This document shows positions 6,801 to 56,279 of a stretch of 64,000 bases of DNA, piece after piece. Position numbers and translations under genes: made by a program. Within the stretch, counting starts at the first letter, position 1. Every line of letters starts with the position of its first letter. The DNA is from Podarcis vaucheri. Its lineage: Eukaryota. The stretch lies in the NCBI GenBank assembly GCA_965113315.1, contig OZ220368.1; one strand, 5' to 3'. The notes below the pieces were generated by a model. The model saw nothing but the letters and a program-made list of their open reading frames with translations. It was not told the DNA's origin and made no database searches.

Positions 6801-9800
6801 TGACCTCCCAGTGTGTTTCGAGTTGTTCCTTAGGAGCACTTTTGAACAACTAGTTTGAACCTGTTATCTACACACTGTTGCAATTGACTGTTCAAGAGTG
6901 TCCCTGAGAATATATTAGATCCATAAATAGATCTTGAACACTTGGAGGCGGTCTTCCTTCTTTTTCCTGCAATTGGTACCTTCCCATTTTTCTTTTCTGC
7001 CTCAAAAATAAATGGCAAACTGAATGAGGCAGGTGACCATCTTTCTTTGGAAAGGGGAGCCCTTCCTTTCTGCACCTTTTATTACAGTGTGCTTTCCTCT
7101 GTTGCTTCAGTATTGTAGATTGAATGAGTGAATCTGTTAGGCTTGGTGTCTTTTTCTCGACAGAAATTTATGTGCCTTCAGCAAGGGCACTGAAGGCAGA
7201 AATTATCCCATCTCTAGTAAGGAGCACCTTTTAATTTTTTTACCTGGCATGTAGCTGTATAAAGGCTTCCATTGGAAAAAAAATCTGATGACCTTCAACA
7301 GCTAATTAAGAGAGAAAGTGGTTCTCCTAGTGATCAGTGATGAAGCATGCCATGTTGTTATGACTATAAGCTAACAAATAACACAAATTACACTGGTTTT
7401 GCCTTCCAAATTAGCCAAGATGCTTTTCAGTTGGCTTTTCAGATAAGCCTCTGATATGTTCAGTGTAGATGTACCATTCACAGTACATAGTTTAATGCGA
7501 AATAATAGTGTATGAGTGATAGTTATTTACGTGACGTTTTCCCCTTCAAGTGTTACAGGTCATATATACAAAGTAGTTCACACTACTGGTCTGGATGGAA
7601 AAAACCTTCTGGAATTGCTTCCACTTTCTAAACGTATAGGAAACATTGTGTCGTTGGTTCAGCCACCAGTCATATCTGATGCTAAAGGGGAAGACTCCAT
7701 GTCTGGTCATAGTCATCTTAAGGACCTGTTTACAAATATAACTCCGTCTTCATTTGTTAAAGCTCCTGAACTTAATACAGCTACTCCTGGAAAATTAATT
7801 TTACCAAAGCCATTGGAAGAAATGGAAAATAAGGAAGTAGCTCCTCTTGCAAAAGAGAACCCAACTACGCAATCAACTTCTACCATTCACAGCAGTTATC
7901 ATTCAGCTGATAATTCCTGGGAAAAGGATGCTACTCTAGTTTCCCCACACAAGAGCAGTGCAGAATATGTACCTGTGAATAAAAAACTCCCAGTTACTGT
8001 GAAGAGTCCTGTAGTGCCCTCTGGACATCACCTCCAAATACCAGCACACGCAGAAGTAAAATCTGTCCCAGCTTCTTTTTTGCCTCCAACAATTCAACAG
8101 AAGATACTGGCCACAGCAGCCTCAAATGCCTTTAGAACATGTGAAGTTACAAATGCATCAACTGTTATATATGTGTCGCCAGTAAATACAGTGAAAACAC
8201 ATTCAAAACCATTGCCAAATTTATGTCCACAGCCTGTCGGGGAAGTATCAAAATCTTTGGTGCTGACAATGGCACAAACAGCAGCCAGTAGTTCTGCCCT
8301 GGTAACGTCTGATAGCCTGGGAAACCAGTCATCTCCTATGAAGTGGGTTGTTGAAGAAAACCCACAATCAGCATCCTGCCTTGTTCCTGTAAAGTCGTCA
8401 AACAGCGTGGCATCAAATATCTTAAAAACATTGGTTAATCCTGAAGATGGAATAAACAACCCTGCCAGTATTCTGCCTACATGTTCGAACAACCTGAATG
8501 AAAGCCAAGCAAAAATGCCCTCGATTAATGATAATGCTCTGGTGATGTTCAATGGGAAGGTGTATTTACTGACTAAGAAAGAGTCCACTGTGACATCAGC
8601 AAGCAAATGTGGCAGCCAAGTATCATTCGGTGCTGAAACACATTTCAGAAAAAATTCATTACAGTTCATTAATTCAGCTGCAGATAGTACAATAACCAAC
8701 CAAGTTGTCAATTTAGTATTGTCGAAGAACAAAGGAATTGCCCCTTATGCAAAGGATCCAAAATCCAGTGAGAATATGAGACTTTTCCCACAGTCTGAAC
8801 TAAAGGATTTTAAAGTTATGTCTCCATCTTTCACACCACCACATGGGAATCTGCAAGTAAGCAGCACCAGCCAACCTGAGGCAGTGTCCACACCGGAAAA
8901 CGTCCTAGCTGGAGGAAATGTTGCTAAAATATCAGTCACAAAAGAAAGGATAAAGGATTGCTTACAGAAAATTATTCCTCCAAAAGTGCCTGCTGCTGCT
9001 TTAAAGCCATCTACAAGGCATGGTACTTCTGAAGACCAAGATCGAAAGGTAACTTTCTCGCTAGAGTAAATTGTACCAATGGTACAATTGTCTTTGATTT
9101 GAAGTGTCAGTTGCCTTAAATGAGTACTGTTACATAATTATTTTGATAGGGATGATTTTAATAGGCTATCTGACAAGTGAGAGTAAAAAAAAATGAAACT
9201 GGTTTTCATTGCCTGCTGCCTCAAGCCTTTCACTGAAAAGAAATAAAATCTGAACCATCAGCTGTTGTAAGGTTCTGTGTTTCTCCAACAAAAAATACTT
9301 TGTTGATGTCTATAGTACTAAGATACAGAGGCACTGAAATAGAGCTACCATGCAAGCTTCCAAGCTGTTGGGGCTAGGTGTACTGCTTGCCCTGGGCAAT
9401 TTTGATATTTAATCCAAAGGGGCAATGTTCTGGCAGTTCGGAAGGGGTCCTGTTTGTTTACTTGGGGCAGTATTGAACTAAATAATTGTGCAAACACAAG
9501 GATTACGATAGTGTAACAGGACTTCCACCCCTCTCCTCCCAGTACATGTACCCTGCACTGTCCCCAGATTTGTTCTGGAAGGATGTGGAAACCACTAAAA
9601 TATATTTAAGAGGGGGAGCGCATTCTGTTACATTCAATACAACCCCATAGCTATTTATTATTTATACATATATATGTGGAAGGCAATTCACAAATACACC
9701 CCAAAGCGATTTACAGTCATATCCTTAAAAAGAGCTAACATAATTTTTAAAAGCATACAAAACAATACAGATTTAAAAACAACACACAATGAACACCTAA

Positions 9801-32565: not shown

Positions 32566-32904
32566 ATGAGTGGGAATCGATCCGTGAAGAAACGATGTGG
32601 GGAATTGCAGTTGGAATCCCCTGTGCGCTATGGTCATGTTCCTTCAGCAGGATGTACATTAAGCAAGCTGCTTCAGTTGCCTACGCCACCTTTGACAAAA
32701 CATCAGCTAAAACGGTTAGAAGAACACAAGTATCAAAGTGCTGGACGGTCCCTGCTTGAACCACTAATGCAAGGCTACTGGGAATGGTTAGTTAGAAGAG
32801 TACCAGCTTGGATTGCCCCTAATCTGATTACAATAGTTGGACTGATAATAAACATCTGCACAACCATAATATTAGTGTGTTACTGTCCGACAGCTACAGA
32901 GCAG
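32566..32904 (+). CDS. CEPT1: CEPT1 coding exon 1 (exon likely begins at 32495)
   Basis: ORF 32566; donor CAG|gtaagt. Confidence 0.96.
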
Positions 32905-38900: not shown

Positions 38901-41900
38901 TGGGAATATTTATAACCTTTTACAGATACAGCGGTACCTCGGGTTAAGTACTTAATTTGTTCCGGAGGTCCATTCTTAACCTGAAACTGTTCTTAACCTG
39001 AAGCACCACTTTAGCTAATAGGGCCTCCCGCTGCTGCCGCACTGCTGGAGCACAATTTCTGTTCTCATCCTGAAGCAAAGTTCTTAACCCGAGGTACTAT
39101 TTCTGGGTTAGCAGAGTCTGTAACCTGAAGCGTCTGTAACCTGAAGCGTATGTAAGCCGACGTACCACTGTAGTTAAAACTGGGAATAAATTTGCAGCAT
39201 GGGAGAACCACATCTGATTTAAGACCCTGTAAACTTTTTATTGACATTAACTGCAGTCACATACTTTCTCTCTTAGGCACCTGCTTGGGCATATATTGCA
39301 TGTGCTTGTGGCCTTTTCATATACCAGTCTTTGGATGCTATAGATGGGAAGCAAGCAAGAAGAACCAATAGTAGTAGCCCTTTGGGAGAACTTTTTGACC
39401 ATGGCTGTGATTCACTGTCCACAGGTATTATGTCATATATTACTGAAATATAAGGGTCTGTTAAGTCATTTATACTTTGAAGGATACTTGGGATACTGAA
39501 CTGCAAACAGAAAGAAAAACTGTTGGCGCTCTGGCAGAATGAAAATAATGTACTCTGATTGTATAATCCTGTGCCATCTTTCAAGGTTTAGCTAGTACGT
39601 TTAATACAGAATCAAAATTTCACTAGGTAATTTTAATTTCATAGTAAATAGTTTAAATCCTTATGTTAAAATGACAGTAAATCTAAAGTATTTAAATATT
39701 TGAAATATGATTGGGCATTTAGATTTCTAATCTACCCCCTGTCCAGATTCTTTGAACAAAGATGCAATAAAGTAGAGCTGAGTACCTTAAACTATAGTTA
39801 AAAGAAGTGATGGTTTAATGTGAGAGTGCAGCATGCTTGCACATGCCACTGAAATCACAGGCACTTCACCCCTGCACCTGCCATGTTGCTGGAAAGCAGA
39901 CCATACATAGTCTGATTTAGTCTTGCATCCAAACCTGGACTCATGAATCCTTCCCACCCCACAAAAAAACCCCACAAACCATAAGTGGTTAGCATACCTT
40001 GGTTTTTCCATGTGTTTGGAGAGAAACAAACCACAAGCCCAGGTTCTGGGGTCATGCTATGCCACTCCGTGGTTTGTTTCCTGGCTGGAGCACTTAGGAT
40101 GCTACACATTCACATTAAACAATAGCTTATTTGAATTATGGTTCAATGTGATGTGCAAACTGATCTGAGTCTTTTAGTTTCATTCTCACTTCATTATTGT
40201 TGAAAAGCACCATGGTTTTCCAGTTCCCCTGGAATTTCATCCATTTTCCAAACAAATCCTAGACATCAGAAGGGAGTTTATGAAAGATTATAAGGTTGTT
40301 TAATAAGATGCCAGAAATTGAGTTAGCCTACATGCTACAACTCAGGGAAGCTCCTGAGCCTCAGGAACAAAGGCTTTGTGCAATCCCTCAACTTGTCCAA
40401 CCAAACTTGAAGCCAAGTGCACCTTAGGCAGAGTCTCTCTGAGCTCTTACCTGTGTCCATGTGATGGACCTCCCTTAGTCTCAGCCCTGTTCCTGTAGGT
40501 GGAAAGGACTTACAGAGATTATATGTTGAAACACTGCTTTGCTTTAACTTGGTCCAGTCCCATCCACACATGGTCAGTGATTGCAAGTGCCTAAGACTCA
40601 GAAGCTTCACAAACTGTCCTGTAGGCTAGCTCAGGGACTGCCCAATTCCTTGAAGCCCCCAAAGTAGCTTTAACAGGTTTTTTAAAAACATTATCTAAGA
40701 TGTGACTAGTGTGCAAAATTTGGGTACAAAGCACACACACACACACACTGAAACTGTATGTGTAATTTTCTTAGCTGTTGGACCATTTTGTCGAACTCAC
40801 TGAACATCCAAATTTAGACATGAAAATTGAAATTGTGATATTTTAGCAGTGTTTTGCTGTAAGTTGGATGTTAAATATAAAATAGAATAAAACTTTTAGT
40901 TAAGAAATAATGTTTAGTAAAACATTATTAAGCACCCCTAAACCTACTAAACAGAATAAAACATGAAGAACCTCTGATAAAAACACTGAACAGTCTCATC
41001 CAGTTGCAACCAAAATTAGCTGTGCTGCTTAAAGTGATGCTTAATGCTATGATACATTAAGTACCGGTAGTTGAGTTCCTGTCTAACAACCTGTGTACTA
41101 AGTACTTTGCTACAAAAGGGCAGCAAAGTGAGCAAAGCTATTGCAAATACTGCTTCATCAATTTCGCGCTCCTTTACCTTGATTAGGGGAAGCAGGAGGA
41201 ATTATAACACAAGAAAAGGAAACCAATGTGCTTAATCCTAATAGTCAGATTTTTCCTCTTTCTTATTATGTTTGCAGAATTACAGTATCAATCTAACAAT
41301 TCTGGATCTGCTGTAGTGCCACATTAACTTAACCATAACAGAATTGGGCTGCCCAGTGGTTATGAAATGTTACTTACCATGCAGTTGTCTTATGTGTGTC
41401 CGCTTGGAAGTAACTCTCACTCCATTCAATGAGACTTACTCCCAGACAAGTGTGTTTAAAATTTGCAATCTAAATCATGCAGTTATTAAAACTCAATGGT
41501 AATTTTATTTTCATATTTAAAATGTGTAACAGTATAAATTCTGATGGAACTGAGAACCCACCAGTTTTCTCTAGTTTAGTTACTTTGACTGTTGAAATTT
41601 GTTTCTGACTATACTTTATGCATATATTTGATCTTGAATCATAAAATTCTTATGACCATGCATCAAAAATACAGAGCAGTAAGTAAAAGAGAGTGCCAAC
41701 TGCGTACTACAGACTATTGAACACATTTGTTTGTTCATTCTTTGCTTTTGAAATCTGTAATCTATGCTCATTTTAACTGATTTTTTTCTGCAGTGTTTGT
41801 GGTTTTGGGAACGTGTATTGCTGTGCAGCTGGGGACAAATCCTGACTGGATGTTCTTTTGCTGTTTTGCTGGAACGTTCATGTTTTACTGCGCACACTGG

Positions 41901-44900
41901 CAGACATATGTCTCTGGAACATTGCGCTTTGGAATGTAAGTAAACCACCTAAGAGAGAAACCTAATATTGCCAAACATTACACTGCTAAGTGATTAAGTC
42001 AGTCAGAAGGTATATGCAAATCTATAATCTATGGCAGAGTATATTGAAGCAGTGTTTTGGCCTAAACAAAAGTAGTGCTAATTAAATTGTTCTTTCAGTT
42101 CATCATAGTGAATAACCAGGTTGAGAATAAGAGGCACCAACTTGCAGTGTCACACACAGGATGTCAGGAGGCGGCTCAGGATGGTGCTGAGTGCAGTGCG
42201 GCTTCAGTGGCCAGTGGCTCCTTTCTCTCATGTGGCCTCTTTCCGTGGTAGGAGGAGGAGCTGGCCACTGAAGCTGTGCCATGCTTGGTTCCGCGCTCGG
42301 TCTCCTCCACCCTCTCAAAACTGCCCCCCCCCCAAAATAGCTCGGCCCCAATGGTGTCCCTGATCATAGTTTATTAACAGCACAGATTGATTAAGGATAG
42401 TGTAGGAATCAGAGACATAATTAGGTGCCATGCAATTCTGTTTTTTCCATTTTAGACCACAGTCCAAACTCCCTTCTCTGGCTAGCAGGACTTTGTAAAG
42501 CCGTGGAGCAACTTTTGCACCTGCTGCTCATGGTGGCCACAATGGAAGGTGGGGGCGGGGAGGGGGGAAGAAAGAAGACACTTAAAAAATTATTTTTAAC
42601 CTCTCTTGCAAGCCTAAGCTCATTCTGAGCTTTGGCCCACCAGACATTCCCTGCAACTGTTGGCTACTCGGGTATACTCTTCCTTTGTGATTTCCCCTTT
42701 CTTCCATTTCTTATATATGGCCTTCTTAAAACTCAGCTCATCTGTAAGCTCCTTATACAGCCATACTGGTTTCTTTAGATGCCTCCCGCTTTACCTGCTT
42801 TGGTATGCAGATACAGGCCAGAGGAGAGGGAAGAAATGAGTGGGAAAGTTTAATGGAGTGCACTAGAGTTCAGTGTTGTATAAAAACATTGCAAAACTAG
42901 CTTTGAAGGGCAAAAGTAATTCAGGCAAACAAGAGTTTTGGGTAAACTTAAAAAAAATGGGGAAAGGAAGGACAGTTGCCAGGATTAATCCCTTCTGTCT
43001 CTCAAAATTACAGTGGTGTGTTAATTACCGTACTTAATATTAAAATTAGTGCCTCAGAAGGGCATTGCTTTCTTGGAGCATTAATAATATCATACATCCA
43101 GTAGAAAATAGACCAATGTAGGCCATTCAATTGCTACTATGGAAGCTAAAGTTTCTCTCAGGCTGAAGTGTTGCAGCCTAACTTCCTTTCTGCAAATTCT
43201 AAGATATGCTTATTGGAATCTGTGTATATGTCTATTTTTTCTATTGCCCACCCTTCTCCATACTCAAGATAAATGTTATGTAGCTGTTTTATGCAGTGAT
43301 TTCATGCAATTGTCTTTGACCCACAATTCTGGATTTTGGAGAGCTCACTGAACTCCAGTTTAGGGAGTCACTAGGCTGTCACTAGGTTAGTTAGTGTATA
43401 TCATGAAATGAAACCCAAGCTTGAGTGTAACATGAGGTGAGACATAAGCTTAGCAGCTTTGCTGGCAAAAAGAACTACATAATATTAAATAACACATCTT
43501 TAAATATATGCTATATTTACATTTTTACAGTTTGAAATGTACACTAATTAACCAAGTTTGTTTTATTTGACAAAGCAAGAAAGAACAAGCATTCTGTTCT
43601 GTAACCTTTAAGAAAATGTGTTATACATTTTGAAAAATATGATTGGTTCATTTCAATCTGGTAGACTGTGCTAGTTCAGCTAGCTTTGTTTCATTAGGTC
43701 TTCTCTTTTATTTAAATGCAAATATTTGATTATAATGGCCTAAAAATGGACTTGAGTAGCTGCACTGAGTATAACTAATGCTGAATATTACCCAAATGTT
43801 TAAATGTAGCATTCAAAAAATCAGATGCATTGCTTAGATTGCAATAATTGTTTACTTTGCATGTTGAATGCTGTCGTTATTTTTTAAAATGTTCCTTTCT
43901 TTAGCTTTACCTATCATGGAATGTTTCTCCTTCCCTAAATACAATTCACGTTTTAGTGCCTGTTTTTAATATAGTGATTACAGATCACTAGTTAAGGATT
44001 TAGCAGGTTTAAAAGGCAAAAAAAAAAAATATTGTTTCTACCTAAGTTATAAAATCACTGACTAATCAAATCAGAACATGCAAATTATTGTCCACACCAA
44101 TCTCAAGGGTAGGAAGCTTGTTTAGCAATAAGTGACCTGACATCTTCTCACATTCAGCTTTTCTGTCTCCTATCTTCATTGCGGTGCCACAAGGTATAAT
44201 GCTAGTGTCACCAGTTACCATTCATACAGTTTGAAGAGTACATTTTTACTAGATTCAAAGCTTCATAGGTAATGTTAAAGCAGGAATGATAGTTGGGGGA
44301 AACAAGCCTTAACAATACATGGTGACCGAAACATTAGCTAAATTTGAAAGTAGACTGTCTGCTTGGTGCAGAACAAATAGTCTTCTGTGAACTAAAGAAA
44401 GAAGTAAGTTGCACGTGAGTTCAATGTTCTGCAGACCATTTCAGCCTTAACGTGGAATATTTTAATAAATATAAAATAGATGCACAGCCCCCTTACATTC
44501 TTCTTACTGCTTTATTTACAAAGAGACCAGTGTAAGTGCTTAAAAAATCTAGTGTGAGTAAAGCTTCCTTCTTATAGCTGCTTTTCCTGAGTACAGTGGT
44601 ACCTCGGTTTCTGAACTTAATGTGTTCCGGAAGTCCGATCTTAAACCAAATCTGTTCTTAAACCAAGGCGTGCTTTTCCTAATGAGGCCTCCCGCCACCG
44701 GTGCCCTTCCACCGTTCGGCTTCCGTTCGTAGACCAAGGTAAAGTTTGCAAGCCAGAACACTACTTCCGGTTTTGCGGAATTAATAAACGGAATAGTTCG
44801 TAAACAAGACTGTTCGTAAACTGAGATACCACTGTAAAAGTAAAATTTACACACAAGTTTAAACACAAGTTTAAGTCACATGATTGTAAACATATTATCT

Positions 44901-47900
44901 TTATTTGCATTCGTTGGGTTAAAATATTACTGTTACAACTGACGTAATATTTAGTTTCAAATTTCATTGTATTCAGTATTGTTATTGAAAATGTAAATCT
45001 TTAATTTCAATTTCTGTGGTGTTTGCCTAGTAATTTGTATTTGAATTATGCACTGCTTTTATAATATTTTCAGACTCCTTATGAGTACAGTCCAAAGCCA
45101 TTAAACTCAATGGGCACTTTACCACTGACGCCAGTGGGATTGAATTAAATTGTATGGGATGTGGATTTACTACTGCTTTTCATTTTTCTCTATAATTGTA
45201 ATTGCAACTGTCATAACATTCTGAAGGAGATTACCCTGATTTCAAGTCTGTATCCTTAATACAGTGTGAAAAACTGTTCTTATGGAACTATTAAGTTGAA
45301 GATTTCTAAGCAAGCTGTTTTTAAATGTTTCTTTCCCTCACACATAGATTTGATGTTACAGAGTCTGAACTCTGTCTTGCAATAATTCAGCTTCTCACAG
45401 GAACTCTGGGACCTGGGTTCTGGAATAACACGGTAACAGATACAAATCAGTGTTACCCAATGAACAATGGCATGAAATCTCTAGAAGCAGCACCTTTTTG
45501 TCATGCACAGAGTAACTGCAAAAATGCCAATTGTTTTCCTGGTGATATTTCATGGACATTTGTTTTAAAGGCAACTCATAATGACTGAATGAAAAATAAA
45601 AACTCACTCAGATTATTGAACTTTTCCGCCCCTGTTTACTTTAAAACAAAACAAAAAAAGCTTTGTTTTGAAACTCTGGTGTTTTCTCCCCTATTGGCTA
45701 CTGTAAAATACACAGAACTGACTTCACCTCTTTGAAGAGCAGAATGCCAGAGTGGTGGAACCATCTCTATATATAAGGTCTGGATTAATTTTGTTGGAAC
45801 ACCTTTGGAATATTTCCTCCCTTTTTTGCTAGAAACCTTTCCACCAGGAAAAAGAATTGTTAACATAGTTAGCTATCGTGAAATATATTGATGTTAGAAA
45901 AGTATTTTTACAGGGCAATCCTAACCATTTCTACTCAGAAGTAAGTCTTACTGAATTGAGTGGGACTTATTCTCAGGTAAATTGGGTTAGGATTGCAGTT
46001 TTAGTCATGTTTTAGAGTTCCTTGCCCTCACGCTTAGGAAAGAGCACTATAGGATCTTTCCTAACCATCTTTGTAATAGTGATGTAATTTCCTCATAAAC
46101 CGAAATTCCATTGCCAGCTTCCCTTTACCTAGATATTAGTAAAGTAAATTCAAGTTCTTAGAAGGGGTTTTGAGCTTTCTGTTGCTTGGTAGAATCCCAT
46201 ATGAATATGTTATTTCTTCAAGATGACATAATTCTAAGAAAGCAACTAAACTTGGGTCTTCTGAATCTCTCAATATCTTGCTTAACTTTGCTGTCCTTTT
46301 CTTGAACCTCTTTCTATTAATATTATTTGTGAAAGCAAAAGTCATTTCACACAGAAAGATTGCTGGAACAACCTTTCTCAATCTAATTTGTACCTGTTGC
46401 CAAGTAGCATATGGGTGTTGTTTTTTTCAGTACTTGCTAAACTTAGGGATTGAAGTCTGTTTCATTCCTGATACAGTCAAGTGGGGTCGGGGTGGGGAGT
46501 CCCATTCCAAACAAGACTCTCAGGCACATGGGCATGGGAGCTAGCTGTACTCTGCTCATACCAAAAGTTGCAGGAAATACTGATTACCTTGGTCAAGCAT
46601 TTCTGGCATATTGTATGAAGCAGCATACAGTTTGGATGACTTGGTGTGGGGCACAAAACAAGCTGCAGAGCAGACTGCTGATAAGTTTGAAACTGAGAGT
46701 CAGCTGTGCCAGCATGTAATATCAGTAAGGGGGGGGAATAGCATTTATATCATGCTTTCAGCTGTTCAAATGCAACATGGGGTCTGTAATCCTTATAGCA
46801 ACAATGTAAGGTCCTGAGGAGGACAGATGCTGGGGCATAGTAGTTTCGCTGCAACCCTGTAGTGAGTAGTGGTTGAGGTGGCATTTGAACTGAAGACCTC
46901 CAGGTTTGAGGGATGCTCATACCGTAATAAAACTGTGACAAGTCAACAGGACCCTGAATATTTTTTTCACGAGTTTTACAGCTAACTTGCCCCAACTCTG
47001 TGGAGCAGCTGTCATTTTTATTTCTATTTTCATATATACGTCTGATCAGATTTTTTTTTTAAAAAGCAAGACCAAACGAGTACATGGCGAAATGAGGACT
47101 GAGGTAGAATGGCCCCTGGAGTTGCACATAACTGACTGAACATTTTGAGGTAAATAAGCTGCACCGTGAAAACTATTAGACAGAAGGTGTCCCACTTTGT
47201 TTCAGAGTATGCACCACCACAAGTGGTCTTTTGCAGGTGCAATCTTTTAAAATTCCCCATCTCAGTCTAATAGAGCGGTGTTCCACTAAATAGAAAGATT
47301 TAAAAGGCTGCACCCATGAAAATAGTTTTGGAGGGAAATCCAATGCCCACCTGAAGACCCTTGGGTTGGCAGTATTCTTTGTGGGGGCTACCTGCCCCCA
47401 TTGATTTTTACGGATACTGCCATCAAAGACACAGGCATTAGAAAGGCCTGCAACTCTCCCTGACCCTGGTTACCCTTGACAGCTTTGTGCAGCCAGGAGA
47501 TACCGTATTTTTTGCTGTATAAGACTCACTTTTTCCCTCCTAAAAAGTAAGGGGAAATGTGTGTGCATCTTATGGAGCGAATGCAGGCTGCGCAGCTATC
47601 ACAGAAGCCAGAACAGCGAGAGGGATTGCTGCTTTTCACTCCGCAGCGATCCCTCTTTCTGTCCTGGCTTCTGAGATTCAGAATATTTTTTTTCTTGTTT
47701 TCCTCCTCCAAAAACTAGGTGCGTCTTGTGGTCTGGTGCGTCTTATAGAGCGAAAAATATGGGTATATATATCCCAGTGGGACTACTTCTAGTTGTACAA
47801 AGTTGTCATTTAGTAGGTGGTGTGTGTGTGTTGGGAGTAAGCTAGAAATTCTGACTCAGATTTTATCAGAACCAAAGAATAAGTTGGTGATTTGCAGTAT

Positions 47901-50900
47901 GTGCCTCTTTCAGGCCAGTAATATGGCCTGCAAGTTCATATCTGAACCTGTGCCTGGTGAATTTAACTGGCACCTCAGCTTTGTACATTTAATGTAAAAA
48001 AGTTGAGATCTCACATCTTAGATTTTAAAGATGTAAATGATGCATTTAATACCTTCAAACATAAAATAATGGTTAATAAAATCTGAATTAAAGCAAAAAT
48101 AGTAAATTGAAATGCAGACATTATTTCTTTCACAAGGTCAATTTATAATAGGGATTCTCCCTGACACAAACATAATTGATAGTGCAAGTGTGGTCCTGAA
48201 ATGCTGATCATATGTGGGACATAAAATGGATTTAACACAGTTTGTAAGTATTTGAAGGGAGTGTTTTGAAAATGTTATAGTCTCTCATTGTAAGACTTCA
48301 TATGTTAATCTATTATATTTTCTCACAAACCCATCCTGTTCCCACTTTCAGATATTTCTTCCTCTTCTGTACTCTCTCTGCTGCCTCAGTTTTCTCTTTG
48401 ACTAACAGTGTGATTTACACAAGTTTGCTTAATCCAGTTCTTCTCTGTTCTTGGTGTATATTTCCCCTCCTGCCATCATAGATGAAACTAATTAAAGTTT
48501 TTGAACCAGTAATTGCATCTGCCACAACAGAGTATTAAATGTTATGTTAGCAGTGATTTGAGGCCAAACGTTTGTTAGAAGTTATGAGCCATTCACTTAA
48601 CCAAGTGCCTTCAGAAATTATGTAACTCATTCTGGGTGTGAAGACACTCTCCTTTGTAATTGGCCCTTGGATGCGGGCACATCCCCATTTGGCTTTGGAA
48701 CTTGAACCTATGTAGATTGTAGGTATAAAGTACATATAAACAGAAGCATTTCATTTCTAGTGCTAAGGTCTACATTATGTTTCTCTTGTGAAAATAAGGG
48801 AGTGCATTGGTGTCCATTAGTAATGCCTGTGGAAAAGAAAGAGAGTAGAAAGCATGTGGCAAATTAAGAAATCATGATTTATTTATTTTTCTTTATATTA
48901 TGTACATACAATTATATACTTTATCATTATACAAATGGAGTATGTACACATATGCAACTTTTTTATTACTCTCTGTGAATTCAGCAGCACTCCTTCTCAT
49001 TCACGAAAGACAAGACAGGATTATCTGAAATTAAACTTTTATTGTGACTCATGGAAGAATCTTAATCCATCAAACAGAAAGTCAGCACTGTCAGCTTTGT
49101 TGGCATTGCTCACCTTTGAGAAGAGGGGAGGGTACCCAGGAATGTGCCCTCACTTTCTAACATGGTCACCTGCTTAACAGGAGCACTGTAGTCCACAGCC
49201 AACCATGGCCTCTTAGCTAATGAATCTGCATAATTAACAATAAATGGTGAAAACATGTATGCTGCATGCAGTCTTTACATCGTTACACTGGGGCTACTCT
49301 GAGTATGGCTTATTCATACTACCCATAAGTGTCAGTTGGCCTATTAAGGAAGACCCAAACCCCACAAACTTCAGAGTTGCGACCAAGTGCCCTTCAAAAG
49401 AACAGCACTAGCTAAGACTAGTAGAAAACAGTGGTGTTGATGGTTCACTGAAGGTGTAACACTGCCAAGCTCTTCACCATGGTTAAGATATTGGTAGCAA
49501 GCTGCAGGCTTGCACCCTTCCTCCCTTCTCCGGTGCAAATCCCCTTACCTTATTTGCCTTAACCAATTTGGTGCTACTCAGGGATGCTTCTTAACCAGAG
49601 TTTGCAAACCTGCTTCAAACGCTGGTTAGCTTTAAGCATGGTCACTGCCCGAAGGTATCACATTTAACCATGGGAAAAAATAAAGAGGGAAGATTTATTA
49701 TTGAGAGGTGAGGGTCCTAATGTCTTATCCATGGTTAGGAGACTGGTAGCAGTTCCATGCCTATGTGAATAGCAGGACAGAATGAAAGGAGAAAGATTGT
49801 GATGAGGGCAAACATTTTTTTCAAGAAAGTAAGAGTCGGAATTCTTTTTTTTGGTGGGCAAGGTTTAATGCTTACATTTCTGCAACTGCTTATGGTTAGC
49901 TGAAAGAAGTAAACAAGTTCCAACTTTTCCTTTTGGCCACACTCCTAGACAGTCATGGTGTCGGTAGGAGAGAAGCAGAGGTGCAGCCAGAGGGGTTTTG
50001 AAAACCTGTCCAGCAGCCAGTCATCGGTGGAATGGGAAATCTATCTTGCACTTAAAACCAGTTTGCCTATACAGCCAGTTGATTGACTTCACTAGAAACC
50101 TTTAAAACACCTCTGGCTATGTATGTTTGACACATGCCTGATCTAGAACTGTCTAGAATTGCGACCCCTAACTAGATCTCCATTTTCTGTGCTGTGATGT
50201 TAACAAATAGCGGTACAGCAAGAGTATATCAAGAAAACATTTTCTCCATTGTTTTGTTTTACCTTGTGCATGATAGAGGAGCGCTGCCATGCTTGCAGAT
50301 GGATTATAATTGGCTTTGAGTAATTGTGCTTTTTTGGCTTTTTTGTACCTAATCAGAATTGATGTGACTGAAGTTCAAGTCTTCATAATAACCATGCATT
50401 TACTGGCAGTGATTGGAGGACCAACATTTTGGCAAGCGATGGTAATTCTGTTCATCTTGTATATCACATGTAACTTACATTGTTTATTTTCCCCAACCCA
50501 TTTTGTTAATACTTTTAGAACAGTATCTCTTTCCTTTTTGTTGGAGAGACCTTCCCATTTTGGCTATATTGCACTGGTTCATCCCACAAGATATTTAAAG
50601 CAATCATTCCTTTGTATTATGTGCTGCCATTTAGGCAGAGGGAGCCCAACACATATTCATTAAGGAGAAACTTGGTCTGTTGGTTGAACAAAGCATTCAC
50701 ATCTTGATGGACAGTTCACAAATCTGCTAAATTTGGAAAGGGAGGACTATTGCAACTGGATGCAGATCCTGAGCGTAAATGCGATGGCAGTGGTAAATCT
50801 TTGGTAACTATGTCCGACTAAATAATTTTTTAAGATGATTTGGCTGCCATAGTTGCTTGAGCATGCTATATGTATGTCTACTAAAATATAAAAATTTGGT

Positions 50901-53900
50901 CCATAACATAGCTGTGTGTGTCTTGTTTTGTAAGCTATCTTAAAATCAAAAGCTAATTTGCTGCAAATCAAATTTCTGCTACAATTTAATTATACAATAA
51001 ATAAATAAATAATGTGGAACTTGCAAAATGTGAGTTAATGTTAATGTGTTACACTCAAAAGGAAGTGGTGTGTCAAGAAAAGCCTGGTTAAAAGTAAGCC
51101 TAGCTTTCTTTGAAGTATAAAACACATAAAAGTATTTTGAAGTCTGCTCTGAAAATTTAATATGGTGCTATTTATATACACAGTGGGGTTTTTTAGATTT
51201 TCTTGACAACTGCTGCTTATTTTGGTGGTTTCTTATACTGGGGGGAAAAACACAACTCCACTTGTATAGAGGAAAATGTATCATTAAAATGTTTGCTTAT
51301 TATTTCAATTGCACATGTACTCAATCATTCCACTTTTCTCTCTAGGGCATTTCTGTGGCACTTCAGCATTTGCCCAATAGTTTCACAAGACAATAGAGCA
51401 ATATTCTGTTCACAGCTGATGGAAGAGAGGCAGAAGGTGGGGGGGGGGGAGAGCTGATACTATACTGCTGTTATCTTCTATGCCTTTTGTTAACCTTGCT
51501 ACTAGGTATGCAGCTCAGCAAGGGAGATGGAAAGTGCACAGCCTCCCAAAGAGTAAATGAATGCCTGTATAAATGTTTACGACATGATGGGAGAGAGATA
51601 GTTATGCTGTTCCTCACCACTCTTTTAAAAAGAAATTTAAAAGCACTTCTTTTTAAAGCTGCAGTGGTGGTGTGTGCAGCCATTATAGAATTAAAAAATG
51701 AATTGTTTGTTAATAGGAAAATTTGGTTGATTGTCATTAATTGACTCATAGAATTGTAGAGTTTGAAGGGACCACGAGGGTCATCTAGTCTAGCCCCCTG
51801 CAATACAGGAATCTTTCACCCAGTATGTGGCTTGAACCCATGGCCCTGAGATTAAGAGTTTCATGCTGTACCAGTTGTGCTATCCCAGGTCTTGGCTTAG
51901 TTTGGATGATTGTTCAAGTCATCATAAAACATAGTTTATGAAGCTGTGAAGCAGTATTTACTAAATTTAATTAATTGTTAAATTTCTATACTACCCTTCA
52001 CCCAAAGATCACAGGGCAGTGGACAATATAAAAACACAAAAATACATACCAAACAAACAACAATAACCCCCCGCACCACATTTTAAAAGGCCATAGATGG
52101 TTTAATTAGCCAAAAGCCTGTATTAGGGTTGAGTGCCCACTCCTTCCCCTAATCTCATTGTGTGCCAGTATTGGTGTGAAGAGGCTGTTACACTCAAACT
52201 GTGGGACTTTGATTTAATGCCAAAGGGCGGGGGACGTCCTGCTCCCCACTGATTTGTCAAATGGCTTTTGCAGCACCATCTGTGTGTGCCAGTGTGCCAA
52301 GACCACCCTCTAGTGTCTGCCACTGACAAGAAACTAATGGCCATTGGGATGTTGCACCCCCCTGCCTGCCAGGAAGAAGACATGGCAAGGGGAAGATCAG
52401 CCTGGTTCCATCCATTAGCCAAGGAAACTGCTGTTCCAGGAAATCTGTTCCCCACCTCTTATGCTTAAAGAGAACAGTGCTACAACTGTCAGTTGCCCTG
52501 GGACTTGTGAGAGCATCCATCAGCTTACTAGGCTGTGTATGTGTGAGCTTGTGTGAATTTGCTTTATTACCCCATACTTGTAAACTGTCTTGAGAATCAT
52601 TTGATTGAAAGGTGAGGTATAATCTTCAAATTAAATAACAAGCCCCTTTTGTTTCTTTACAGTTCTCTTGGTTTTGTTAAGTTCATATCACTGTTTTTCA
52701 AATACTGTTCTTAGTTCAAATTTCAGGGGAAGAGTTTCAGAATAATACTGTAGAGTAAGTGCAACATCCCTACCAGCTGTAGTTTGGTGGTGGTCAGGAT
52801 TTTGCAAATTAATTATATAAAACAGATTGACAGTGGCTGTTCAGAATTGACAAAAGGAAGTTCTTTTTCCACATAATGCTATTTTGCCTAGGGAATTGAA
52901 TGCCACAAGATCCAGTGATGACCACAGGCATAAGTGGCTTAAAAACAGAATTTGATAAATTCATCGAGGGTTGATCAACAATGACTGTTATGCATTATAA
53001 TGGAACCATCATTTTTCAGGGACAGTATACCTTTGTCGGATGCTGGAGACAAACAACAAGGAATGTCGTCACCCTATTGTTTAGCTTTACGAGCATCCCA
53101 AGAACACCTCTCTGGCCACTGGCCAGGGTACAGAAATTGACCATGTTTTCACCCAGCACTGCAGCCCTGTGTACTTACTTTTCTATTTGCTTTTCTTCAT
53201 TTCTAAGCTCTTAACATGAAAATTTGAAATATCTTGAAATGTCCTTTCCTGATTCTTTAGACATATCCTATCTAGTCTGGCCTCTATGTGACTTCCAATT
53301 TCTTTATTATTATTTAATGTATATCTCACCTCCCCTATAGGAACTCAAGAGGATGTGCAGGTTTGCCCCCCTTTTCCTTCAGAACAACTTTGTAAGGTAG
53401 AGTAGGGTGAGAGTAGAGTGGAGATTTGAACCCTGCTCCTGCCAGTGGTAGGTCAACATTAACTACCACACCATACTTCATGGATCCTGGTTTCTGACCA
53501 CCTCAGAATGGAAACCTAAATACTGACTCCTCTGTCCATTCAGTATTGTCTGCTCTCCCCAGGAATAAGTTCTCAAATACTGATATTTCTCCTGTGTTGT
53601 CATCATGGATACAGGTCTTCAGCTATCTGAAAGGTAATGTGTGAAAGAATATTGTACCCCCTGTTGTTTCTAGGTAGTTCGCAAATACTAGATTTGGAAA
53701 AGTGGAATGTTTGAGTTTACTTGAAATCTAGAATTCTTTAAACTGTGTCCATATTTTTCTTCCTCTCCTGTTAAGATTCCAGTGCTTAACATCCCAGTGA
53801 AAATACTTCCAGCTCTTTGTACTGTAGCAGGAACCATATTCTCCTGTACAAACTACTTTGGTGTGATCTTCACAGGTGGTGTTGGCAAAAATGGATCAAC

Positions 53901-56279
53901 TATAGCAGTGAGTTTTTCTTTACCTTTTGGGTAACTCACTTTCCCTTTTCCCCTGCCAGTCTTTAGAATACTATATGTCTTTGAGTGGACTCATTTTATT
54001 GGTATGGTCTTCTACTTTGCATACTGGCATAAGGAACACAGTTGGGAAGGAGTTTGGCCGTCAAGTCCTGTTGCCTATCAAAACCTCTTTCTCTGTGCTC
54101 AGTACAGAAGCCAAGCAAGCTGCTGATGGAAGAAATTGGCAACTTTTCCCAGCTACTTGCTGAGAAAGGGAGCCCTCTTTCTCAGTGGCTGGCAAAGATC
54201 ATCATGTATGGATGTGTGAAAATTGTGTGTGTGGATGGAGTGTGGGCAGGATGTTTGTGGCATCAGCCCTGCTGACCACTGACATGCACACCCCAAGTTA
54301 CCCTTGAGGGAAGGGAGCCCTCGAGTTAAAAAATATTCCCTATCCCAATCTAAATGAAACATGCAAATGCTTCAGGGGCTTTGGAAATGAGGAAATTTCT
54401 TTTTAAAAAAAAAAATCTGACCCAGGCCTATAATTTTCTGACATGATTTTTTTTTTGTTTGCCTGCTGGTTGTGTTAGGGTAGATTCATAGATTTCACAT
54501 GGTAAATGGTTCTCCGTTTTTCACCGATGATGAAATAACCATGTCTCTGATCTACCACACTTATTTTCAGATTTCAGTACAAATGTTGATCTTCAATAGA
54601 TGTGTTTGTGGATTTTGCATTTTAAACTAAGATGGTTGACTTTTTAGTATGTAGTGCTAGACATTGTTTTTGTTTCGTCATCCAGATGAAAATATCTGGG
54701 CCACTTGTGCTTTAAAAATTCATCCGTTCACATCTGTTAGGCTAGAACTGGGTAAGAATTGCATTTCATCAAGCTGTTTTGTGACTGAAATTGCACTTAG
54801 GCCGGGCATGCAGCACAAAGTTCACCGTGCCTGCTTTTCTGTTAGCGACTCCAACCACACAGCCAGGTGACATCCTTCTCTACACTTCCTTACTGCCAGC
54901 TGAGTGGATTAAATAATGTAGCGCTAGAATGTTACAAAAGGACAGTCAGCCAGCCTCCAGTTGTTCTGGAGATAGCATGTTGAGATATTTGTTTCTGTAA
55001 TATGCCCTTGATAAATACAAAGCTCTTTCTCTGTGTAGGGAACAAGTGTCCTTTCACCGTTTCTTCACATTGGATCCGTCATCGCGTTAGCCGCTATGAT
55101 CTACAAGAAATCTGCTGTGCAACTCTTTGAAAAGCATCCTTGCCTCTACATACTGACTTTTGGTTTTGTTTCTGCTAAAATAACTAACAAACTGGTGGTA
55201 AGTTAGAGAATTTATTTTATGAGGTGTCCCATAAATACAAGCAAAGTACTTAACTCTTAGTATTTGCTGGTCTCATATGGTATACTTTGTTGTGAAAGGT
55301 TTACTTTCTTTCTCCAGCTGCAAACAATGATTTTCCAAACTTCTTTCAAATACTGCATTTATGAAAGCTGTATAGTGGCATATGTAATGATACGCCTCAT
55401 TTGCTTCCAACAGAGTATGCCCTGGGAAATTGGTGATAGCCCAAGCTATAAAGAGAAATCAGAATTCAGTTGTTTACACCTCCCCTCCAATATTAAATTA
55501 TTCAGTATAGATGCTGAAATAGAATATTTATGAGTTTTAATTTTTCCCAACAGGTTGCACATATGACCAAGAGTGAGATGCATCTGCATGACACAGCATT
55601 CATAGGCCCAGCACTCTTGTTTCTGGACCAATATTTTAATAGCTTTATTGACGAGTATATTGTACTTTGGATTGCCCTGGTAAGTATTTCCTTATTTTTC
55701 TGGGCATGAAAAATATCCTTGTGTGTTCTTTCACGTTAACGTAAGCAACTTTAGTTTTGCAGATGTCTAATGAAAACGAGGGAATGGTACAGAAAAAATC
55801 TGGGCAGCATAGATAAGTTTCCAAGCAGTTGTTTTATTCTTGCATGCTGGCGTACATTTGGGGGTTTTGTTTTGATTTGATTTTTAATCTTGCTTTATAT
55901 TTAGTTTATTGTACATAACCTAGAGAATTCATTATGAGTCGAATATCAATGAATAGGGAATATATACCTGCGGCTGGAGGTTGGGGAAGGCTGCTTTAGA
56001 GTTTAGAAAAAGCCTTTTGTTTCAGAAAGACAAGGATAATTCTACACTTAACTGAAGAGAGGAACCCATTGCATAGAGAATGGATACAAAATTTGCAGAA
56101 CAAATTATTTCTGAGCCTTTATGTTTGGATGTCACATGTAACTTATGTTCTTCTTCCAGATCTTTTCCCTTTTTGATTTGCTCCGATACTGTGTCAGTGT
56201 TTGCAATCAGATCGCTTCCCACCTTCACATCCATGTCTTCAGGATCAAGACCTTTTCCACATATTCTAATCATCATTAG
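32566..56279 (+). CDS. CEPT1: Choline/ethanolamine phosphotransferase 1, whole gene: join(32566..32904,39277..39424,41794..41935,[45348..45432 OR 50357..50441],53776..53907,55039..55197,55554..55679,56160..56279), 416 aa
   Basis: [30 protein letters not shown]; CDP-alcohol phosphotransferase motif [23 protein letters not shown]. Exons 339/148/142/85/132/159/126/120 nt sum to 1251 nt. Confidence 0.97.
33093..33389. mobile_element. Tc1/mariner MITE (short relative of the element at 63167)
   Basis: TA-CAGTGGTGCC...CCACTG-TA; repeated GCAAGACGAA motifs shared with 63167-64000. Confidence 0.8.
34554..34794. mobile_element. Tc1/mariner MITE
   Basis: TA-CAGTGCTACCTCCGGTTAC ... GTAACCAGAGGTATTACTG-TA. 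Confidence 0.85.
35195..35575 (-). mobile_element. L2 LINE 3' fragment
   Basis: Similar to 60880-61280 and to the reverse complement of the L2 ends at ~6000-6400 (gcagtctttaagatatttgagtcctaagttgcttagggcc). Confidence 0.5.
38470..38665 (+). mobile_element. tRNA-derived squamate SINE
   Basis: A box TGGCTCAGTGG, B box GGTTCAAT, body gccagtcagtgtaga...gatggaccaatggtctgact, tail TTCTTATGTTCC. Confidence 0.75.
38929..39170. mobile_element. Tc1/mariner MITE
   Basis: TA-CAGCGGTACCTCGG ... CCGACGTACCACTG-TA. Confidence 0.85.
39277..39424 (+). CDS. CEPT1: CEPT1 coding exon 2 (catalytic motif)
   Basis: [49 protein letters not shown]; tctcttag| and |gtatta. Confidence 0.97.
41794..41935 (+). CDS. CEPT1: CEPT1 coding exon 3
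   Basis: [46 protein letters not shown]; ends phase 2, |gtaagt. Confidence 0.96.
44594..44834. mobile_element. Tc1/mariner MITE
   Basis: TA-CAGTGGTACCTCGGTTT ... AAACTGAGATACCACTG-TA. Confidence 0.85.
45348..45432 (+). CDS. CEPT1: CEPT1 alternative coding exon 4a (duplicated, putatively mutually exclusive): [28 protein letters not shown]
   Basis: 85 nt, phase 2->0, acceptor tttctttccctcacacatag|, donor ACG|gtaaca, open frame, 10/28 aa identical to exon 4b with no gaps. Confidence 0.8.
45911..46000. repeat. Short palindromic interspersed repeat (related copy ~41380-41470)
   Basis: gcaatcctaacc...gtaagtcttactgaattgagtgggacttat...ggttaggattgc forms an imperfect hairpin. Confidence 0.6.
47503..47763. 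mobile_element. Tc1/mariner (CCGTATTT-TIR) MITE
   Basis: TA-CCGTATTTTTTGCTGTATAAGAC ... GTCTTATAGAGCGAAAAATATGGG-TA. Confidence 0.8.
50357..50441 (+). CDS. CEPT1: CEPT1 canonical coding exon 4b: [28 protein letters not shown]
   Basis: 85 nt; matches the mammalian reference segment as recalled; aatcag| and |gtaatt. Confidence 0.95.
51748..51888 (-). mobile_element. tRNA-derived SINE with CR1-type tail
   Basis: Minus strand: GGGATAGCACAACTGG...GGTTCAAGCC head and ATTCTATG tail; tail resembles that of 23339-23490. Confidence 0.7.
53776..53907 (+). CDS. CEPT1: CEPT1 coding exon 5
   Basis: [44 protein letters not shown]; |gtgagt. Confidence 0.96.
55039..55197 (+). CDS. CEPT1: CEPT1 coding exon 6
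   Basis: [14 protein letters not shown]...[25 protein letters not shown]; |gtaagt. Confidence 0.96.
55554..55679 (+). CDS. CEPT1: CEPT1 coding exon 7
   Basis: [42 protein letters not shown]; |gtaagt. Confidence 0.96.
56160..56279 (+). CDS. CEPT1: CEPT1 last coding exon
   Basis: [39 protein letters not shown]; acceptor ttcttcttccag|. Confidence 0.96.

Follow-up and report, generated by a model that had tools for sequence, protein, structure and literature searches.

The window analysed here, a stretch of 64,000 nucleotides (64 kb) from Podarcis vaucheri, contains the CEPT1 (choline/ethanolamine phosphotransferase 1) gene of a Podarcis wall lizard. The enzyme makes the bulk membrane lipids phosphatidylcholine (PC) and phosphatidylethanolamine (PE). 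The gene carries two versions of one exon, 4a and 4b, each encoding transmembrane helix 5 (TM5), residues 211-238 of the protein. The coding features are as follows.

32566..32904, + strand: CEPT1 coding exon 1, residues 1-113, from the start codon to donor GTAAGT; tblastn match of 100% to P0272 residues 1-113
39277..39424, + strand: CEPT1 coding exon 2, acceptor AG at 39275-76 and donor GT at 39425; carries DxxDGxxAR...GxxxDxxxD
41794..41935, + strand: CEPT1 coding exon 3, TM4 region, ending ..TLRFG plus the two bases AT, donor GTAAGT; common upstream partner of 4a and 4b
45348..45432, + strand: CEPT1 exon 4a, 85 nt, phase 2 to 0, alternative TM5 (residues 211-238)
50357..50441, + strand: CEPT1 exon 4b, 85 nt, phase 2 to 0, TM5 of the CEPT1 form with a solved structure
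53776..53907, + strand: CEPT1 coding exon 5, IPVLNI.., TM6, acceptor AG at 53774-75, phase 0, donor GTGAGT at 53908; common downstream partner of 4a and 4b
55039..55197, + strand: CEPT1 coding exon 6, from tblastn of P0272 on the window
55554..55679, + strand: CEPT1 coding exon 7, from tblastn of P0272 on the window
56160..56279, + strand: last CEPT1 coding exon, stop codon TAG at 56277-56279

The reference protein in this list, P0272 (XP_028590521.1), is the 416-aa CEPT1 isoform X2 of Podarcis muralis. Exon-wise peptide matching and tblastn of P0272 on the window showed that P0272 matches each coding exon without a mismatch, including all 28 residues of 4a. Two further Podarcis entries carry an identical sequence (UniProt A0A670I121). 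The record is a computational model, and no protein-level difference from the window gene is detectable. The motif in the exon 2 translation is the CDP-alcohol phosphotransferase signature, and Pfam PF01066 is precomputed on all full-length CEPT1 relatives. Orthology points to a dual choline/ethanolamine phosphotransferase. Together the coding exons span 1248 nt, or 416 codons, with 4a or with 4b alike, which bears out the earlier proposal of two 416-aa products that differ solely at residues 211-238.

Anatomy of the exon 4 pair

The two exons have the same length, the same phase and the same flanking exons, 3 and 5. Each is an 85-nt segment preceded by AG and followed by GT, runs from phase 2 to phase 0, and holds 28 stop-free codons; the window sequence yields both peptides as the preliminary description gave them. 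The flanking splice sites that it named also hold, with two bases left over at 41935 and phase 0 directly after the AG at 53776.

The ungapped alignment of the two peptides has 10 identities in 28 positions, as first noted, and scores 45 with BLOSUM62. Shuffling 4a and aligning it again to 4b gave a mean score of -25.9 with an sd of 11.2, and a score of 45 was never reached in 100,000 shuffles. The two strands of the 64 kb hold 29,970 windows of 28 codons without a stop; among these, 4a was the top non-self match of 4b (45 vs 25 for the runner-up), and the converse was also true. The CEPT1 gene has 25 open candidates of the form AG-85nt-GT. Mutual resemblance among them is confined to 4a and 4b, and no third copy of exon 4 is found in this set. 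The donors of both exons are suboptimal and are without a G at +5 (ACG|GTAACA and ATG|GTAATT). A motif scan extending up to 300 nt around both exons found a single UGCAUG, 90 nt upstream of 4b, which is at chance level, and otherwise nothing notable.

The existence, conservation and annotation of this exon pair are already established, and the lizard case is a correct rediscovery. Exon 4a had been described as hidden, which was mistaken: it is published for human and is annotated in Podarcis as RefSeq isoform X2. Hatje et al. 2017 (Mol Syst Biol, PMC5740500) reported the same exon in human CEPT1 and validated it by RNA-seq; in supplements 3, 5, 6, 7 and 11 it is marked '>10 joining reads' and 'Frame-shift', and its differential inclusion is listed as significant. 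The human pair occupies the same slot in the same gene, with the same 85-nt length, 2-0 phase and frame-shift logic. The human peptide listed as 'MXE candidate in intronic region' is identical to the window 4a at 20 of 28 positions (hand count from the supplement peptide), and the human constitutive exon is identical to the window 4b at 24 of 28. Martinez-Gomez et al. 2021 (NAR, PMC8373072) reported conservation of the CEPT1 exon as far as sharks and rays. GENCODE did not yet include the human exon in 2021, whereas the lizard exon is already a RefSeq isoform. No paper comparing the activity of the two CEPT1 isoforms was found in the literature.

Conservation and splicing across jawed vertebrates

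A search for 4a beyond the lizard, as the preliminary description had proposed, turned up annotated CEPT1 isoforms from sharks to mammals. These amount to at least 45 distinct 4a-type sequences with no indels, from sharks, rays, sturgeon, bowfin, teleosts, coelacanth, amphibians, squamates, birds and mammals. In these isoforms, the 4a-type peptide sits between exon 3 (..TLRFG-I) and exon 5 (IPVLNI..). Judged from these sequences, the exon pair is at least as old as the common ancestor of jawed vertebrates. The 4b form had been taken as the mammalian standard, and this stands for the solved structure, 8GYW, but not as a general rule, since mammal RefSeq isoforms carrying 4a exist (P0202, P0193).

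For each of the two classes the aligned set holds 44 distinct peptides, with a range that runs from cartilaginous fishes to mammals, and every one of them is 28 residues long and stop-free. By pairwise identity in this set, 4a evolves faster than 4b (means of 15.0/28 and 20.0/28, respectively), and the window 4b is identical to mammal and turtle 4b at 24 of 28 positions. D212, E215, G231 and W235 are invariant in both classes. Other positions are conserved in a class-specific way, with T in 4a vs A in 4b at 227, V/L vs G at 230 and N vs Q/E at 236, along with 216 and 219.

The reading frame supplies a simple logic for exclusive use. As 85 is not a multiple of 3, including both exons or skipping both breaks the frame, and exclusivity is thereby enforced. 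A transcript with both exons meets a stop at codon 2 of 4b, and one with neither terminates eight codons into exon 5. Nonsense-mediated decay would presumably remove both kinds of transcript.

Transcript evidence was drawn from Logan contigs, whose RNA nature was guessed, over the stretch from exon 3 to 4a. The proposed junction from 41935 to 45348 (GT..AG) was seen in one of four runs, in a single contig from a close relative (run X3), which joins the last 29 nt of exon 3 to 4a. The depth of this contig is about 105 (104.8), vs 4-12 in the intron. For the junction from 4a to exon 5 and for the two 4b junctions, support comes only from annotated protein models and the published human RNA-seq. 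An 87-aa open frame around 4a, used as a query, matched only two fragments, neither of them spliced; P0151 is a Logan ORF that lies in the intron downstream of 4a, and P0152 is a bird-like 4a ORF, also unspliced, on a metagenome contig. Taken together, the fixed 28-aa length, the lack of indels, the annotated isoforms, the spliced contig and the frame logic support the earlier suggestion of an old tandem duplicate that purifying selection maintains and that serves as a mutually exclusive alternative.

TM5 exchange and its likely consequences

The structures of CEPT1 describe the 4b form. In these, TM5 lines the hydrophobic chamber for the acyl tails through V213, V216, F219 and I220 and makes up one side of the gate, a slit between TM5 and TM6 by which diacylglycerol (DAG) enters and PC leaves (PMC10156783, PMC10182977, PMC11696302). 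Residues that bind the head group are found on other helices, including Glu65 and the motif on TM2-3 (PMC10156783). The match of the sequence to 8GYW has E = 1.6e-238. An AF2 model of the 4a isoform P0272 superposes on 8GYW with a TM-score of 0.98 (target-normalised), an rmsd of 1.2 Å and 90% identity. The model places a helix at 213-230, with pLDDT of 85-94 over 4a, and the 4a isoform is thus predicted to keep the ten-TM CEPT1/CHPT1 fold. At the chamber positions, 4a has V213, S216, C219 and L220, and G230 is replaced by L or V.

It is very probable that 4a and 4b are tandem duplicates used as mutually exclusive alternatives, each joined to exons 3 and 5, and that they give rise to two 416-aa enzymes differing in TM5. 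The exchange would act on DAG selection or gating. Because chamber positions 216, 219 and 220 differ in 4a, the swap could retune the choice of DAG species, most likely via the channel for the sn-2 chain, or it could alter the dynamics of the gate; the catalytic motif would be left untouched. We infer altered DAG selectivity of the 4a isoform from the position of TM5 in the 4b-form structures and from the mutant V216A/L, as quoted in PMC10156783 (V216A from Henneberry 2002). A conserved helix switch at the acyl-chain chamber would be a plausible way to tune, by tissue, the DAG species that enter PC and PE.

If 4a were an intronic fossil of the duplication, decaying and without use in protein, then three of the four Logan runs, which have solely unspliced or genomic contigs through 4a, would fit, as would its faster evolution. 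This account is rejected, and we give it practically no credence: 44 distinct peptides have stayed at 28 codons without a stop or an indel while keeping class-specific residues, RefSeq models splice 4a precisely in many lineages including Podarcis, the contig joining exon 3 to 4a has roughly tenfold the depth of the intron, and human RNA-seq validates the exon (PMC5740500). A different proposal is that 4a serves mainly to lower CEPT1 output, for example through joint inclusion of 4a and 4b leading to nonsense-mediated decay, rather than to make a distinct enzyme. The immediate stop on joint inclusion and the suboptimal donors lacking +5G on both exons speak for it. However, a poison exon requires no conserved peptide, and for over 400 million years 4a has retained D212, E215, G231-P232 and W235 along with the hydrophobic character of its helix; its modelled form is a TM5 that superposes on the solved enzyme. 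This use of 4a as a poison exon is therefore highly improbable and was also rejected.

A more serious alternative accepts that both isoforms are made but places the difference elsewhere, in N-glycosylation at N236-x-T238, in stability, in sorting to the ER vs the Golgi, or in the choice between CDP-choline and CDP-ethanolamine. Of the 44 distinct 4a peptides, 29 carry an N-x-[ST] sequon at 236-238, and no member of the 44 4b peptides does. With both termini cytosolic and 10 TMs (PMC10182977), the loop from TM5 to TM6 would be luminal. However, the 4a exons of shark, coelacanth and many teleosts lack the sequon. Oligosaccharyltransferase usually needs roughly 12-14 residues from the end of a membrane helix. 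N236 lies only about 6 residues past the end of TM5 in the model, and this shorter distance counts against use of the sequon. Positions 216, 219, 227 and 230, the most consistent differences, fall within the helix in contact with the acyl tails, and the head-group residues sit on other helices (PMC10156783). It seems unlikely that the difference lies in these properties, and an effect on DAG selection or gating is preferred.

Origin of the pair and related systems

In a tree built from the 28 columns of the exon, invertebrate CEPT segments cluster with 4a (SH-aLRT 97) and 4b clusters with CHPT1, the vertebrate paralogue, though the data are weak. On the same columns, both a 4a clade (p = 0.79) and a 4b clade (p = 0.54) survived the AU test. 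The alignment is too short for dating the duplication relative to the split of CEPT1 and CHPT1. The Drosophila CEPT homologue bbc also has mutually exclusive exons, and it is with 4a that the invertebrate segments group in this weak tree. CHPT1 shares the fold and has a homologous TM5 exon of 28 codons, but all 97 cluster representatives listed have a single exon type (..FGG..WD/E..) and none is 4a-like. Among the sequences examined, CEPT1 alone appears to have an alternative TM5.

A tentative reading, less likely than not, is that 4a rather than 4b resembles the ancestral TM5 and is perhaps the broadly used isoform, with the 4a and 4b enzymes differing in their preference for the DAG sn-2 acyl chain. 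The ancestral likeness is drawn from the grouping of 4a with invertebrate CEPT segments and of 4b with CHPT1. The broad use is drawn from the Protein Atlas table of Hatje et al., where the 4a-type exon has a lower Gini index and a higher top value (PMC5740500). If this is true, then CEPT1 biochemistry and the solved structures, all of the 4b form, describe only one of the two enzymes at work in the organism.

As the preliminary description shows here, raw sequence is enough to spot genuine mutually exclusive exon pairs. The classic tandem-duplicated pairs of SLC25A3, CACNA1C and SNAP25 (PMC8373072), which exchange a membrane helix or a pore segment, are similar to the CEPT1 pair in that homologous exons of equal length and phase swap one structural element in an otherwise constant protein. 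Unlike in these systems, the element exchanged in CEPT1 is not a channel or carrier segment but lines the lipid-substrate chamber of a biosynthetic enzyme.

Anatomy of the exon pair

CEPT1 carries two alternative versions of one exon, 4a and 4b, for residues 211-238. As the preliminary description had it, and as can be read directly from the window, both are 85 nt long, are flanked by AG and GT and contain no stop codon.

Coding exons of CEPT1 in the window (peptides of exons 1-3, 5-7 and the last exon all lie within P0272, the 416-aa RefSeq protein XP_028590521.1)
32566-32904, + strand, coding exon 1
39277-39424, + strand, coding exon 2
41794-41935, + strand, coding exon 3
45348-45432, + strand, exon 4a: 85 nt, AG before, GT after, phase 2 to 0, 28 aa, stop-free
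50357-50441, + strand, exon 4b: 85 nt, AG before, GT after, phase 2 to 0, 28 aa, stop-free
53776-53907, + strand, coding exon 5
55039-55197, + strand, coding exon 6
55554-55679, + strand, coding exon 7
56160-56276, + strand, last coding exon; stop codon 56277-56279

Exon 3 ends at 41935 with ..TLRFG plus 'AT', followed by the donor GTAAGT, and exon 5 starts at 53776 in phase 0 with the peptide IPVLNI... The coding exons sum to 1248 nt (416 codons) with either 4a or 4b, which bears out the two 416-aa products proposed earlier. Recounting also upheld the 10/28 identities of the ungapped 4a/4b alignment. Its BLOSUM62 score is 45, a value reached by none of 100,000 shuffles of 4a (mean -25.9 ± 11.2). 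Among the 29,970 stop-free 28-codon windows on both strands, the two exons are reciprocal best non-self matches (45 vs 25 for the runner-up), and no third copy of exon 4 is present among these windows of the 64-kb stretch. The likeness of 4a and 4b is beyond chance. Upstream of CEPT1, a 517-codon open frame lies at 7516-9066 on the + strand.

Exclusive use and transcript evidence

The reading frame enforces exclusive use of 4a and 4b, because double inclusion and double skipping both give early stops: when the exons are joined, 4b reads N and then a stop, and when both are skipped, exon 5 is read for seven codons before a stop. Such transcripts would presumably be removed by nonsense-mediated decay. 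Steric exclusion as the cause of exclusivity is ruled out by the 4924-nt intron between the two exons. Both donors lack a G at +5, as is typical of regulated exons. A single UGCAUG, an Rbfox-type hexamer, occurs at 50267-50272, 90 nt upstream of 4b, which alone is at chance level; the 300 nt on either side of 4a contain no such hexamer.

Logan contigs from four lizard sequencing runs were placed on 41700-45700 only. One of these runs, X3, comes from a close relative with 1-2% differences from the window. It contains a 114-nt contig in which the final 29 nt of exon 3 run straight into the complete 85-nt exon 4a. This joint, 41935 to 45348, which the preliminary description had named as a junction to look for, skips 3412 nt with GT..AG ends, and the contig has a depth of 104.8 vs 4-12 for X3 intronic contigs. 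Such a pattern is characteristic of spliced mRNA that uses the 4a acceptor. The other three of the four runs gave only unspliced contigs across 4a. Within intron 3, short contigs from all four runs pile up at 42504-42771 and 44514-44781 (summed depth up to ~5000 vs 5-12 in flanking intron), with many loose contig ends at 44588-44592; the two pile-ups resemble interspersed high-copy repeats of a SINE-like kind.

Vertebrate distribution and earlier records

A search with shark CEPT1 (P0012) gave 120 cluster representatives, to which squamate cluster members were added. The combined set holds 28-aa segments of both types, 44 distinct ones for 4a and 44 for 4b, each lying between ..RFG-x and [IV]P... 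The 4a-type isoforms are found in sharks and rays (Mustelus, Heptranchias, Narcine, Pristis), non-teleost ray-finned fishes (paddlefish, sturgeon, bowfin), many teleosts (cept1b), coelacanth, amphibians (caecilian, frogs, newt), 14 squamates, birds, and mammals (bat, deer). None of the 44 distinct 4a segments has an indel or stop codon, and neither class varies at D212, E215, G231 or W235.

Residues at positions that differ consistently between the exon classes
Position 216: 4a S/L/A/V; 4b V
Position 219: 4a C/S/I; 4b F
Position 227: 4a T; 4b A
Position 230: 4a V/L; 4b G
Position 232: 4a P; 4b T/P/S
Position 236: 4a N; 4b Q/E

On average, two 4a segments are identical at 15.0/28 positions, two 4b segments at 20.0/28, and one of each class at 10.3/28; by this sequence measure, 4a evolves faster than 4b. 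CHPT1 has no 4a-like segment in any of 97 representatives, all of one exon type. A tree of the 28 columns, too thin for dating the duplication, splits 4a and invertebrate segments from 4b and CHPT1 (branch SH-aLRT 97).

P0184 (UniProt F1N1V2, Bos taurus, 489 aa) reads 4a, intron-derived residues and then 4b in a single protein, a mis-model that masks the mutually exclusive structure. P0152, from a 3519-nt JGI metagenome contig, is an unspliced ORF that spans a 4a exon resembling those of birds and points to host DNA within the metagenome. P0151 (Logan contig, 1202 nt) matches the window at 100% identity and is an ORF on lizard intron just 3' of 4a. Like P0152, it is an artefact of gene calling on vertebrate intron DNA.

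Comparative, transcript and frame evidence together uphold the earlier interpretation of a mutually exclusive tandem duplicate, a textbook pair arising from tandem exon duplication; the description of 4a as hidden does not stand, since the pair was reported in papers of 2017 and 2021 and RefSeq already annotates it. Judged exon by exon, P0272 holds the exact peptide of every window exon, 4a included (28/28), so the window belongs to a Podarcis wall lizard and the 4a isoform is already annotated in this genus. The record is 'choline/ethanolaminephosphotransferase 1 isoform X2 [Podarcis muralis]', and its sequence is filed under two more Podarcis accessions. Whether 4a is annotated in other vertebrates had been left open; RefSeq annotates it in many other genera as well. 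The human CEPT1 entry of Hatje et al. (2017, PMC5740500) is an 'MXE candidate in intronic region' of 85 nt and phase 2-0 that adjoins a constitutive exon, flagged 'Frame-shift' and '>10 joining reads', with a significant differential-inclusion entry and tissue Gini values. The same work gives alternative splicing at the homologous exon of Drosophila bbc. Its human 4a peptide is identical to the window's at 20/28 positions by hand count. Martinez-Gomez et al. (2021, PMC8373072) describe that exon as conserved in sharks and rays and as a candidate for GENCODE addition.

In the Human Protein Atlas table (Hatje 2017 Dataset EV6), the Gini index of the human 4a-type exon is 0.049, with a top value of 727.6 in spleen, and that of the annotated 4b exon is higher at 0.47, with a top value of 108.3 in duodenum. 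ENCODE B-lymphocyte values in the same dataset are reversed (4a-type 55 vs 4b 656). From these human tables, the dominant CEPT1 isoform may be strongly tissue-dependent.

The TM5 swap

Residues 211-238 form TM5. An N-x-[ST] sequon (N-N-T, codons 236-238, 45423-45431) lies at its luminal end in lizard 4a; it occurs at these positions in 29/44 distinct 4a peptides vs 0/44 4b peptides and is lacking in 4a of sharks, coelacanth and many teleosts. Glycosylation there is doubtful, because in an AlphaFold2 model of the 4a isoform the sequon falls only ~6 residues past the end of the TM5 helix. The model (mean pLDDT 81; 85-94 across 4a) has a helix at 213-230 and a short helix at 232-236. It superposes on human CEPT1 (8GYW) with a TM-score of 0.98 and an rmsd of 1.2 Å, so 4a is predicted to be a compatible alternative TM5.

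A literature search found no publication comparing the two TM5 isoforms. In the human structures (8GYW/8GYX, 4b form), V213, V216, F219 and I220 of TM5 hold the PC tails; V216L costs 40% of activity, and V216A alters DAG use, as quoted there (PMC10156783). The slit between TM5 and TM6 is the proposed DAG entryway in Xenopus CHPT1 (PMC10182977), and in the yeast enzyme CPT1 the path of the sn-2 chain leads from the N-terminal end of TM5 via the TM5/TM6 channel (PMC11696302). Lizard 4a has V213, S216, C219 and L220 at the chamber positions, and L instead of G at position 230. We infer that the switch between 4a and 4b most likely retunes DAG species selectivity or gate dynamics.
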